The notes below the pieces were generated by a model, which saw only the letters and a list, made by a program, of their open reading frames with translations, did no database searches and was not told where the DNA came from. Below, piece by piece: positions 25,550-52,122 of a stretch of 62,481 nucleotides of DNA. Positions within the stretch are counted from its first letter, which is position 1. Each line of letters begins with the position of its first letter. Source of the stretch: Octopus sinensis (Eukaryota); the NCBI RefSeq assembly GCF_006345805.1, contig NW_021831873.1, positions 1 through 62,481 of the forward strand, given 5' to 3'. Both the position numbers and the translations under genes were made by a program.

Positions 25550-25898
25550 ATGAATTACTTACCAGTTAGTCACGACATTCGAAGAGGAAATCTTCACGTA
25601 ATTATATTCTCAGTGCTATTATTATGTTTGGGCAGTAATGTAGCCTGCAGGGAATATTATGGAATTCGTGTTCCACCACCTGTAACTGCCATTCCAGAAG
25701 CTGACAAGTTGATTAAGATGTCAAACATTCGATCACTAATTGAGTGCTTCTCTGTTTGTATGACATATTCCGAATGTGGTATGATTATTTACAGCGCTTC
25801 CGACAAAGTATGTATCCTGCGTAAAATCAAGCAACTACCTGGTGCCTCATCATTCATCGACATTCCTGCAAACAGTATTTACACCATGCTACAAGCCC
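25550..25898 (+). CDS. Exon 1 of a secreted PAN/apple + C-type lectin domain protein (signal peptide and PAN-like module)
   Basis: The ORF has a hydrophobic signal (HVIIFSVLLLCLGSNVAC) and PAN-like Cys spacing (SLIECFSVCMTYSECGMIIYSASDKVCIL). It ends at the donor CAAGCCC|GTGAGT (GT at 25899), phase 1. Confidence 0.8.
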
Positions 25899-26473
25899 GT
25901 GAGTAGTTTTCTATACTTTGTGTGTGTTATGCATAATATTAATTTTCTTTCAACCCATGAAGGAAAGGCATCTTATATCTGTGTCTTTTTATCTATGTCT
26001 TATTGAAGATGATATCGGACGACCTAGAGAAATTTGACTGCTACTATTTCTTATCGGTCAAGCAACGATGTAAAGGTTCATTTTTGGATCACATTACGCG
26101 TGTCCTGAAATAATTATTCTTAAAATCATTTAATAGGTAGTCGTGTCATCTTATCTTAAATCTGTGATGTATCTCTGCCTACCTAACATCATCATTTTTT
26201 CCTAAGGCAGCAGGATGTTTGATTGAAAGCGATTTAGTTGTTATTTCTAAGAAGTCTACCAGCCACATAGGGGCTACCTTTCGGTCTGTATTGTGCGGAT
26301 CACTGGTTTAAATCAATGTCTCTCCAAGTATGGCGATTTGGGAAAATGCTAGGGCTCCCCGAAATAACGTGTTTTTTAAAAAAAATTAAATAAAAGACTA
26401 ATCTATAGATTTAACGCAATTCATATTTATTCCTAATATAATATTATTACATAATGTTTATATGACTAATTTC

Positions 26474-26574
26474 TCTCTCTCTCTCTCTCTCTCTCTCTCT
26501 CTCTCTCTCTCTCTCTCTCTCTCTCTCTCTCTCTCTCTCTCTCTCTCTCTCTCTCTCTCTCTCTCTCTCTCTCT
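26474..26574. repeat. (CT)n microsatellite
   Basis: Read directly from the sequence. Confidence 0.97.
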
Positions 26575-27270
26575 AAAATAATAATGCTTCTTATTAAAAG
26601 CAGTGTAGCAACAAAGTCTGAATATCAAAATTTTTGGAAAAGTCGTTCGAAGGTAACCGCCTTCAAATACCATATTTTCAATTTCAATGAGCAAACCTTT
26701 ATATTTTCTGAGCTTGGCGAATTCTTTTTCCGAGATATTATTATCATAGGGAAAACTCATGTCGATCAATAAACAGACATCATTGTTTTTTTCTTCTATA
26801 ATATCCGCTTTATTAGGTATGATCATTCGGTCTGTATATAATGGAAAGTCCCTAAGAATCGTTACATTTTTTTTTACCTTAGTAACAACTTCAGGGTGGG
26901 GATTATACCACTTGTCAGCAGTTTTGATATTATTATGCCGACATATCAACCAATGTAGATATTGACTAATTCTGTCATGTCCTGATTTATATTCTACTGG
27001 TGCTGAGACTACAATCGGAGCTTAAGTGGTCAACTGTTTCAATCACATCATTGCAGAATCAGCATTTTGGATCTTGAGTAGCTAAGAGGAAACATTGCTC
27101 TCTGCTTTTAGACTTGAGCTCCGTAGCCACTAATGGGTAGCTTCTAGTCAACAGCTGCTTGTTTGCTATGTGTCACATATTTGTCATGGAGTGGTTTCTG
27201 CTCCCATCTATCAGCCTACTGCTCATGCTTTTTTGGGGGGGCAACTAGTCTCACTTCTTTTGTAACAAGA
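26575..27270 (-). mobile_element. R4/Dong-type C-terminal fragment (RLE nuclease)
   Basis: RWEQKPLHDKYV, ETVDHL, then ICRHNNIKTADKWY..P...TILRDF...PNKADII...LLIDMSFPYD.NISEKE..KL.KY. Confidence 0.8.
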
Positions 27271-28689
27271 GTTGCTACACGTCTCCCCAGGTGGTTCAAC
27301 CTGGGCATCCTGTATGAGATCAATAGCACATTCTTGCACAAATTTAGAGGTGAAAGTGAGTCACCATTGAAAATAACACAGTTGACGTTCATATTATCTG
27401 CAGATAGTACTCCATTAGAGTGATGTAATTAAAGATTCGTATTCCTCAATGACATATGCTTCAAGAAATTTGAAATTACATGGGTACTTTTTTCCTAATT
27501 CTCATCTTTTACTCTTTCGGGACTTTCTCATTTATCCTTCCATCACCCTATCGTCTTACAGTATTCTTAGTTATTTATGTATCTCATTATTCCACAGTGA
27601 TGTAATGAACTTTTCTGGTAGCAATTAGCACCGAGCATTTATCTAGAGCAACCTGCATTCCATTATATTTACTGTACAGACTCAGTGTTTGGGTAAAAAT
27701 AATCCAGATCTTACTAATTTTCTGTATATAGCTAGAGATCATCCATTTAAAGTGGTTTATTTTCATCTTAGTTTTCGTAAGCGGGACTGGCTTTTCTCAG
27801 TATGCTTTCAGTGGAATTAACATAATCACTCGTATTTTATTTAATATTCTACCAATACTATATATCTATCTACCTATCTATCGATATACATTCACTGCTT
27901 TCTTCCAATCTAGTGCTGTTAGCTTAGTTTTTCCTTGGAGCTGGATAGATTAGAGTAATCTCGAGTATAACCAGCCGAAATTGACCGGTGTTTGACCAAG
28001 CCTGAGCTTTTTTCTTGGTTCGACTTCCATCCGTGCAACATCTATATTATTCCCCATGCCTGTCGTTTCTTATGTCTCTGCCGTGAAGCTTCACTTCCAC
28101 ACAATCCATCTTAATTTAATTCGTCCTTAGTCGAAAGATACCTGTTGTTAATGTTCTGTAATTTTTCATTTGTATTTGTGTACAATTACTCCGTTTTTTT
28201 CCCGTCTTTGTTTGCGTATACACTCGCTGTTTTCTTCCAAGGAATCTAGTGCTCTTAGCTTAGTTTATTCTTGGAGCTGGCGAGATTGGAGCAATCTCGA
28301 GTATATCCGGCCGAAATTGCAAAGATATTCTGGAACACGACTGAGGAAAGAAAACTCCGAACAACCCGGTTTTTCTTGTCAGTTTTTTGTATCATCTAAC
28401 TTGGTGTTTTGTTGTCCCTTTCTATATCATCTAGCTGTCTGGATGTTTTGTATTCTTGTCCCATTTTTGTATTCCTTTATCTATTCATATATATATATAT
28501 ATTATATATATATATATATATATATATATATACATATGTATGTATATATGCATATGTATATATATATAAAGATATATATATAAATATGTATATATGTATG
28601 TATGTATGTATGTATGTATGTATGTATGTATAAATAGTAGATCAACAATTAAACTTGATTTCTTTCTACATTATTTTTGCTCCCATGAC

Positions 28690-50143: not shown

Positions 50144-50323
50144 CCGAATGTCCGACGTCAGCCGGCTATACTTACCAACCAGAATTGAGATTGTGTTATC
50201 AAATAGGCTCCACGATAACTTCATGGAATAAGGCTGCAGACAATTGCAATAAGGATCGAGGACGACTTATTCACATTAAAAATGAGGAAGTCATGAACTA
50301 TCTAAAAACAATATTATCATGGG
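50144..50323 (+). CDS. Exon 2: N-terminal half of the C-type lectin domain
   Basis: Pyrimidine tract plus AAG acceptor at 50141-50143, 180 nt, phase 1-1. Translates (P)ECPTSAGYTYQPELRLCYQIGSTITSWNKAADNCNKDRGRLIHIKNEEVMNYLKTILSW. Donor G|GTGAGC at 50324. Confidence 0.88.
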
Positions 50324-51704
50324 GTGAGCAACATTTTACTATTTAATACATACATACAACACGTTCTCTCTCTCATTCTGTCTGACTGTCTGTCTGTCTG
50401 TCTCTCTCTCTCTCACACACACACACGCACACACACACACACACGCGCGCGCACACACACACACACACACACACACACACATATATATATATACATATAT
50501 ATACAAAGGTACACATGATATACCTCATATTATAAACTATAACAGATTTAATGTCACTCAAAATTGCAATTTCCTCCCATTTTGCAAACAAAATTCCGTT
50601 TTCCTGCTAATGTTTCTCTGATTTGTACACTATGTTCTGAGTGTTTCTCTTTTTGGGAATTTATCAAATGTAATAATTTAATTTCATTTATTGTTTAAAG
50701 ATTTATATTGTCATTTACTGCCAATGAGTTTACAAAAGAAAATAACTTTGCCAGTTAAGAATAACTTAAGTAATGATTTATTTTAGATTTTGTACTGTTT
50801 GTTATACGTAAAAATTCGAATAGATAGTTGAAACTAAGAAAATATATTTATTATAAAACGTATTGTTATAAATATTTAGAGAATTTAACGTATGAATTTT
50901 CTTTTGAATCAATCTTTTCTTTCTATGGAACATCTTTCGGACTACACCCTCTTCAGTATTAATAACGACAGTAGTATCATGTCGAGTTAGAGTATTGAGT
51001 TTCCCTATTACAGATACATTATTGACAATATAAATACAGTCTCAACGAAATAATCCTCCTTTGAATTTTGATTTTGGTTTTTATCAATACAACATCAATG
51101 CTTGTAGGAGAATGCAAGAGTCGATTAAATTAATCAACGAATTCATAATAGTCATCCTTTTAAATTCCAATAACTTGAAAGGTTCAGTCTGTTTAGTTTT
51201 GAATTCATATGCAAACAGAAGAAATAGATAATTTACTTGCTATATAGCCAGCATTAGACAATAATTTGCGGTTAATTTCATTTTATATACGAAGAACATG
51301 AAAACATAGTGTATTTTGAAATATTTCGTCACAGTTGCTGAAATGTTCTTGCCGCCAGAATCGACGAAGAGATTTCAGTATCTAGTTTACTGATGTACGT
51401 AACAAGAAATCAATTTAAATTAATATATACGTTAGGTTATGTGATTACTTTGCCATAATTCAAAATTTTTCGCTAATTTTCCAGTACACTAAAATTACGG
51501 CGCACACAAGCAGGTCATATGTGGGTTCTAAGTGTGCTGCGACACAGTGAGGAAAAATATGTACACTGAATGAGCGTTCATCTTACAGAAGATGGGAGTC
51601 GACTGTTTCTCGAAATGCAGTGTATAGTCAAGTATACACCATGTAAACACAAATAAGACAGGATGTCATGAGTAATCTGAACTAAATATCAACAATCACA
51701 CCAG

Positions 51705-51796
51705 CAACAACAACAACAGCTAATACTACTACTACTACTACTACTACTACTACTACTACTACTACTACTACTACTTACTACTACTACTACTACTAC
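51705..51796. repeat. (CAA)/(CTA)n microsatellite in intron 2
   Basis: Read directly from the sequence. Confidence 0.93.
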
Positions 51797-51889
51797 AAGA
51801 CAATATATTTGCTCAAACATGTATCGAATTATAACGAATGTCTTCAAGCTGATTATTAATCAAATTTTTTGTTTTCCGTTTGTTTTCAG

Positions 51890-52122
51890 CTGCGGCGCAT
51901 TCAGGTCAGTATTATATTGGATCAAGTAGAGATCTTAACAAGAACGTCTTTGTATGGCAAACTGGAGAAGCACTAACATATTCTCGTTGGTTTTATCCTA
52001 ATCCCTCTGGTGGAAATGAACACTGTGTTAGCCTTGTGCCAACCGCAGATTTCGGATGGAATGACATTCCTTGTCACAACTCGAACATAGGGTGGCAAAT
52101 ATGCGAGATAGTTGTTCTATAA
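51890..52122 (+). CDS. Exon 3: C-terminal half of the C-type lectin domain, with stop codon
   Basis: Acceptor TTTGTTTTCAG at 51889, phase 1. Translates YYIG...FVWQTG...WFYPNPSGGNEHCV...GWNDIPC...QICE, stop TAA at 52120-52122. Confidence 0.92.

Follow-up and report, generated by a model that had tools for sequence, protein, structure and literature searches.

A probable three-exon gene for a small PAN-like and C-type lectin protein in a transposon-rich Octopus gene cluster

Gene structure and annotation

We analysed a 62,481-nucleotide (nt) stretch of Octopus sinensis DNA (contig NW_021831873.1 of assembly GCF_006345805.1; hereafter the window), within which an earlier reading of the letters, the original prediction, had proposed a split gene at 25550-52122 encoding a signal peptide, a PAN/apple-like module and a C-type lectin domain. 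The gene lies on the forward strand and has the following parts:

25550..25898, forward strand: exon 1, 349 nt, ending in phase 1; holds the start codon and encodes the signal peptide and PAN-like module
25550..25633, forward strand: predicted signal peptide, amino acids 1-28; n-region MNYLPVSHDIRRGN, hydrophobic core LHVIIFSVLLLCLG
25649..25897, forward strand: PAN/apple-like module, amino acids 34-116 (REYYG...LQA), placed by its cysteine core and by homology
25899..50143, forward strand: intron 1, 24,245 nt, phase 1; transposon remains and microsatellites
50144..50323, forward strand: exon 2, 180 nt, phase 1 to phase 1; encodes the N-terminal half of the lectin domain, including C151 and the long-form cysteine pair C119/C134
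50324..51889, forward strand: intron 2, 1,566 nt, phase 1; (CA)n and (CTA)n microsatellites
51890..52122, forward strand: exon 3, 233 nt with its TAA stop; encodes the ligand-binding half (C-terminal) of the lectin domain

The locus is very probably a genuine three-exon protein-coding gene of O. sinensis. Its start codon at 25550 is preceded, two codons upstream, by an in-frame TAA (25541-25543), and the exon borders read C/gtgagt at the exon 1 donor, ttctcttgtcttcctaaag/ at the exon 2 acceptor, G/gtgagc at the exon 2 donor and ccgtttgttttcag/ at the exon 3 acceptor (a slash marks the border), both acceptors being an AG preceded by a pyrimidine tract. The three exons sum to 762 nt, an open frame of 253 amino acids and a stop; all three open reading frames (ORFs) and all four splice sites are intact, with no frameshift, premature stop or broken site. 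Both our re-reading of the sequence and the identical coding sequence in RefSeq show that the exons, GT-AG borders, phase-1 introns and total length originally proposed were correct to the base, and the 24-kb first intron was also borne out.

The gene itself is not new. The joined protein is identical, over its whole length, to XP_036354758.1 of O. sinensis (UniRef100_A0A7E6EHG8; P0001 in our labelling), named 'macrophage mannose receptor 1-like', and RefSeq already annotates exactly these exons; on VCDQ01000044.1, the contig that the window covers in full, the coding sequence stands at 25550-52122 and is the sole gene called between 15550 and 62122. The ORF list on which the original prediction drew (at least 100 amino acids) holds exon 1 alone, as 25550..25906, and leaves exons 2 and 3 unlisted, as one would expect of a bacterial-style ORF track applied to a spliced gene. 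The gene had been described as missed, and this is right for the ORF track, from which exon 2 is indeed absent, but not for the NCBI genome annotation, which has it at the same coordinates.

Microsatellites flank the last exon: a (CTA)25 array lies at 51720-51796, some 90 nt short of the exon 3 acceptor, and 27 nt past the stop codon a (CA)52 array begins (52149-52253). The first polyadenylation-type hexamers downstream of the gene are ATTAAA at 52852 and AATAAA at 53784, and the 3' untranslated region is therefore probably at least 0.7 kb long.

Domains of the encoded protein

The lectin half of the protein is readily assigned. Lectin_C (PF00059) matches amino acids 143-242 with E = 1.2e-14 and 55.4 bits, well above the Pfam cut-off of 22.6 bits, and a phmmer search of PDB sequences returned 149 C-type lectin-like domain chains at E <= 1, the best relatives being mannose-receptor lectin domains, mosquito C-type lectins, CD23 and fish type II antifreeze proteins. 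Judged by these matches, membership in the C-type lectin-like domain superfamily is firm. The domain has the six cysteines originally counted (C119, C134, C151, C222, C238 and C248), which are conserved in the family and are predicted to form three disulfides; as they include an extra N-terminal pair, they fit the long form of the domain. Exon 3 carries YIGS at the WIGL position and retains E220 and the WND motif (amino acids 233-235, nt 52057-52065), and a YPN triplet (amino acids 212-214, nt 51994-52002) aligns onto the EPN of the mosquito lectin mosGCTL-1.

The N-terminal module has the four cysteines that the original prediction gave it, in a core of the form C66-x3-C70-x5-C76-x11-C88 that is invariant or nearly so across the family of related proteins described below. 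We searched 1.84 billion representative sequences exhaustively with exon 1 using phmmer, and it matched seven close family clusters, 11 large proteins and nothing else. E values to the large proteins ranged from 1.5e-26 to 5e-4, and the six that we scanned with Pfam each contained 3-21 PAN_1 (PF00024) stretches, the octopus protein XP_036361601.1 being among these multi-PAN_1 matches. For one match, P0035, the aligned residues (429-469, against query residues 58-98) fall within the stretch 428-474 that Pfam itself assigns to PAN_1. PAN_1 is also matched by 13 of 14 paralogue modules at E <= 0.1 (best E 3.3e-5), and the paralogue P0003 carries a precomputed PF00024 match. Homology thus supports a PAN-like module at the N terminus, which would adopt a PAN fold and is predicted to hold two disulfides. 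Like the PAN/apple proteins MIC4 of Toxoplasma and XP_036361601.1, it has the core C-x3-C-x5-C-x11-C-x-L; unlike them, it is a single module and not part of a tandem array, and it is without the outer cysteine pair of true apple domains. The window protein has an additional, non-conserved cysteine, C33, and one might speculate that the resulting odd number of cysteines in the mature protein permits a disulfide-linked dimer.

Some results weigh against this assignment of domains and their presumed properties. On the window protein itself, PAN_1 matches amino acids 55-96 with E = 0.0012-0.0064 and 16.7-19.1 bits, narrowly under the Pfam gathering cut-off of 21.4 bits, so that of the two Pfam domains expected in the joined protein Lectin_C lies above its cut-off and PAN_1 below. 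When the PAN module was searched as a profile through PDB sequences, nothing matched significantly: the MIC4 apple domains (4a5v) had E = 1.1 and a fungal 'Kelch domain-containing protein' E = 5.4. AlphaFold2, run on an octopus-only family alignment of eight sequences, gave an unusable model with a mean predicted local distance difference test score of 29. In the lectin domain, the canonical sugar motif of Ca2+ site 2 (EPN or QPD, with WND) was not found in full, the EPN position reading YPN, and canonical Ca-dependent sugar binding is therefore not assured. Even so, Pfam, the cysteine pattern and the paralogues together support the domain order first proposed, with the signal peptide as its predicted element.

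Comparison with known lectins helps to place the protein. MosGCTL-1 (PDB 9t9z; phmmer E 4.6e-12) and the perlucin-type lectins of molluscs likewise have one C-type lectin domain with WND and conserved cysteines and are secreted, as the window protein most likely is; the paralogue P0012 was once named 'perlucin-like'. These soluble invertebrate lectins differ from it in having no N-terminal PAN-like module, and mosGCTL-1 has EPN where the window protein has YPN. The macrophage mannose receptor MRC1, a protein of about 1,450 amino acids, combines eight lectin domains with a ricin-type domain, an FnII domain and a membrane anchor. Its lectin domains are the top PDB sequence match (5xts, 3e-13), but the window protein has 253 amino acids and one Lectin_C domain, and beyond a weak PAN_1 match Pfam finds none of the other parts of MRC1. 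The protein lies outside the macrophage mannose receptor family, and its RefSeq name, which stems from the best match to one domain, is misleading. The precomputed domain list of XP_036354758.1 gives Lectin_C alone and leaves the PAN-like module unrecorded.

A family of related genes in Octopus

Our searches recovered about 20 related proteins, which come from O. sinensis, O. bimaculoides and O. vulgaris except for two clusters from sequencing-run contigs. Most are about 255 amino acids long and conserve the junction LQA/PECPTS between exons 1 and 2. Paralogues are 60-77% identical to the window protein (P0002 of O. sinensis; P0004, P0006, P0007 and P0010 of O. bimaculoides), and P0008 is its positional counterpart in O. 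bimaculoides. Like the window gene, they have three exons, two phase-1 introns and a long first intron, and at six related loci (L001-L006) in the three Octopus species the copies that are present have retained the exon borders and splice flanks. First introns elsewhere in the family measure 8.5 kb (L003), 15.6 kb (L002), 16.4 kb (L006, O. bimaculoides) and 27 kb (L005); a first intron of 24 kb is therefore normal. In O. sinensis the family forms a transposon-rich cluster of at least about 0.8 Mb on CM016859.1.

Conservation is unevenly spread over the protein. Mean pairwise identity falls from 75% in the PAN part, where 32 columns are invariant across the family, to 66% in exon 2 and 49% in exon 3, the most variable exon, which is 40-66% identical between paralogues. 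The triplet at the EPN position, YPN in the window protein, is EPS, CPD, SPD or RPD in paralogues.

The original prediction had raised the possibility of a lineage-specific lectin and suggested an orthologue search in molluscs. That search returned family members only from Octopus species and so upheld the restriction at the level of protein searches: apart from the sequencing-run contigs, this type of module appears confined to Octopus. Searching the literature, we found no paper on the window protein or its family, the sole relevant one being a general survey of molluscan C-type lectins, and no functional or expression data for the family. In that survey cephalopods have strikingly small C-type lectin repertoires (PMC10140915), which makes a local expansion of lectins mildly notable.

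Joining of exon 1 to exons 2 and 3

The best reading of the locus, and in our view a very probable one, is that exon 1 splices to exon 2 across the 24-kb intron. By tblastn, each of the three family exons occurs exactly once in the window, in order and on the same strand, and the NCBI pipeline built the identical join. Locus L004 of O. vulgaris is collinear with window 422-40137 at 96.5-98.9% identity, which covers a long interspersed nuclear element (LINE) upstream of the gene, exon 1 and 14 kb of intron 1. From the other side, window 34172-62481 has a counterpart in L001 on the O. sinensis chromosome (97.5-98.9% identity by BLAST, and 97-100% in most 500-bp bins), and collinearity with the O. 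vulgaris locus L005 extends over window 32764-62481.

Against this stands a chimeric explanation, in which the model joins remnants of two paralogue copies, exon 1 from one and exons 2-3 from the other, that came to lie side by side through a segmental duplication, a rearrangement or a LINE-associated mis-join; the exons of such a chimera would not be spliced together in vivo. Several observations speak for it and weigh against the join. A search for short transcript-derived proteins spanning the junction of exons 1 and 2 returned known genome models only. The comparison with L004 leaves out the 37 kb immediately downstream (OX597814.1:157,234,360-157,271,237), and a search for an annotated O. 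vulgaris protein with orthologous exons 2-3 showed that none exists. L005 places exons 2 and 3 that are 98.3% and 96.1% identical in nucleotides to those of the window behind a different exon 1 (84-86%). L001 shares the window sequence only from 34172, about 1 kb past the last recognisable ORF of a LINE in intron 1, and its upstream context differs: within the 35 kb available upstream of its exons 2-3 there is no exon 1, and in its place lies a 98.9%-identical duplicate of the exon 2/exon 3 block of a neighbouring paralogue. Where L004 and L001 both back the window, at 34.2-40.1 kb, most of the sequence belongs to transposons. Finally, the cluster contains orphan copies of exon 1 and exon 2 (L007) and several chimeric gene models in which family exons are fused to LINE ORFs or to exons of neighbours (P0005, P0011, P0013, P0019 and P0022).

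We nevertheless regard a chimera as quite unlikely. L004 (up to 40137) and L005 (from 32764) both carry the arrangement of the window across the breakpoint at 34 kb, and two independent loci therefore span that point. In almost all 500-bp bins between 32.8 and 40.2 kb, L004 is nearer to the window than L005 is. We accordingly rejected L005 as the orthologue of the 3' half of the window, L004 being closer by sliding identity, and read L004 as the probable O. vulgaris orthologue and L005 as a paralogous segmental duplicate whose left breakpoint would lie in intron 1 near window 32768. A chimera also sits poorly with the intact reading frames and splice sites, with the window's lack of any competing family exon and with the NCBI pipeline having made the same model, all of which favour a single transcript of exons 1-3.

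Constraint and divergence

The balance of synonymous and non-synonymous change differs along the gene. Exon 1 is 99.4% identical to that of the O. vulgaris orthologue (L004), with two synonymous and no non-synonymous changes, and its ratio of non-synonymous to synonymous rates (dN/dS) is 0.3-0.6. Exon 2 is 100% identical to L001 35668-35847 on the O. sinensis chromosome and 98.3% identical to its counterpart at L005 in O. vulgaris. In exon 3, close copies differ by 0 synonymous versus 5 non-synonymous changes, 0.5 versus 8.5, 0.5 versus 11.5 and 0 versus 5; by a rough binomial estimate that takes about 21% of sites as synonymous, this excess is suggestive, not significant.

Near-exclusive non-synonymous change in close copies of exon 3 could equally reflect relaxed constraint, as would be expected if the gene were a young pseudogene: a duplicate, unexpressed or in decay within a cluster of fast turnover, whose recent origin alone has kept it intact. 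The window is an unplaced 62-kb contig whose 3' half is 97-100% identical to a chromosome segment, and the exact protein is recorded from one contig only, both of which fit such an origin. We consider it highly unlikely: frameshifts, stops and damaged splice sites are absent, exon 1 has changed only synonymously relative to O. vulgaris, and the PAN module is strongly conserved across the family.

Predicted secretion

The N terminus fits a cleavable signal peptide, with a charged n-region of 14 amino acids, a hydrophobic core of about 14 residues (hydropathy maximum of 3.4 over amino acids 15-27) and a CLG/SNV motif that the family alignment shows to be common to paralogues. Cleavage would likely follow the conserved C-L-G, and the most likely product is a small lectin that is secreted and soluble. 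The alternative, an uncleaved signal anchor that would make the protein a membrane-bound lectin receptor of type II comparable to CD23 or DC-SIGN, seems very improbable: the n-region is fairly long and charged, and the lectin domain has several type II receptors (CD23, CLEC4 and Mincle) among its top PDB relatives, but the core is short, the small-residue C-L-G/S next to it is typical of cleaved signal peptides, and there is no neck or coiled-coil region.

Proposed function

From what is known of its domain families, a protein that combines the two modules might use the conserved PAN-like module as a constant surface for binding or oligomerisation and the lectin domain as a variable surface for ligand binding and recognition. 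An immune or pattern-recognition role is plausible by analogy: the variable triplet at the EPN position, the excess of amino-acid change in exon 3 and the tandem amplification resemble what is seen in the lineage-specific recognition lectins of other invertebrates. Because the ligand-binding exon is far more variable than the PAN exon, the family is a candidate for lineage-specific recognition in cephalopods.

A bolder proposal is that the cluster works as a mix-and-match lectin repertoire, in which duplication breakpoints within intron 1 (for example, near 32768) re-pair the exon for the signal peptide and PAN-like module with other lectin exons, and exon 3 is under positive selection. We hold this to be unlikely. 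If true, octopuses would have built a fast-diversifying, lineage-specific recognition family despite a small C-type lectin repertoire (PMC10140915).

With the gene already in RefSeq with identical exons, its value as a discovery is small. What is useful is the correction of its name, to a small PAN-like and C-type lectin protein instead of a mannose receptor, and the view of a dynamic cluster, rich in transposons, for which several annotation pipelines have produced chimeric models.

Repeats in intron 1 and the rest of the window

The window is AT-rich, with microsatellites and transposon remains throughout. Its other features are:

5893-8598, forward strand: LINE-type retrotransposon, with Exo_endo_phos and RVT_1 ORFs
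18113-20841, reverse strand: second LINE, with ORFs of 510 amino acids (RVT_1, 8.8e-32) and 337 amino acids (endonuclease)
29191-32415: 3.2-kb insertion, absent from O. vulgaris L004; triplet microsatellites and short ORFs with no Pfam match
35250-38460, reverse strand: decayed LINE in intron 1, with Exo_endo_phos, RVT_1 and zf-RVT
40236-41254: reverse-transcriptase fragment in intron 1
54234-55295, reverse strand: intact mariner/Mos1-type transposase ORF of 354 amino acids (Transposase_1 1.7e-24, HTH_48)
61534-61965, reverse strand: ORF fragment with a Pif1 helicase 2B domain (4.5e-10)

Intron 1 owes its length in part to the decayed LINE, the reverse-transcriptase fragment and the 3.2-kb insertion, which inflate it; the insertion looks species-specific. 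A further 1.4 kb of the intron, 33548-34943, is absent from L004 and present in L005. No element in the window is less decayed than the second LINE, which lies upstream of the gene and may be young. The ORFs of the element at 5893-8598 are fused with copies of family exon 1 in the O. vulgaris models P0022 and P0019, which are annotation chimeras and show 99% and 93% amino-acid identity to window 6138-6860 and 7645-8133. Scans of the window for transfer RNAs and Rfam families found nothing. Downstream, a copy of the transposase that is 94% identical lies in O. vulgaris L003 (3440-4737), and the Pif1-domain fragment is probably a Helitron remnant.

Organisation of the cluster in three species

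In O. bimaculoides, locus L006 (CM046601.1) has runs of N at 26942-28440, 29406-30676 and 32547-33252, just past exon 2 and at the expected site of exon 3. We therefore rejected a loss of exon 3 in this species, the expected position falling inside the run at 29406-30676, and the truncated RefSeq model LOC128248557 (P0008, 177 amino acids) is probably an artefact of the assembly gap.

In O. vulgaris, the region 157.19-157.57 Mb of OX597814.1 holds two arrays of opposite orientation, L003 and L004 on the reverse strand and L009 and L005 on the forward strand, with related exon 2-3 segments in both, suggesting that part of the cluster was copied by an inverted segmental duplication.

In O. sinensis, the 95-kb locus L007 (CM016859.1, 160.51-160.60 Mb), some 0.7 Mb from the other loci, contains three copies of exon 1, two of exon 2 and one exon 3 fragment; P0003, with its two PAN modules, seems to be spliced from two partial exon 1 copies there. 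A block of about 16 kb is doubled on the same chromosome, 33 kb apart and at 96-98.9% identity (L001 3662-19412 and L002 24908-40731, at about 159.79 and 159.82 Mb). It carries exon 2 and exon 3 of P0002, the exon 3 copies being 100% identical, and a 2A-like piece, and is either a very recent tandem duplication or a haplotype retained in the assembly. The 2A-like piece, ...LDPSVEPNPGP..., resembles an exon and occurs at L001 16622-16792, L002 37901-38071 and L003 30565-30729, downstream of exon 3 of the neighbouring paralogue in both O. sinensis and O. vulgaris; it is used in the chimeric models P0005, P0013 and P0016. Its sequence looks like a 2A-type ribosome-skipping motif, and the piece may derive from the start of a retrotransposon ORF.

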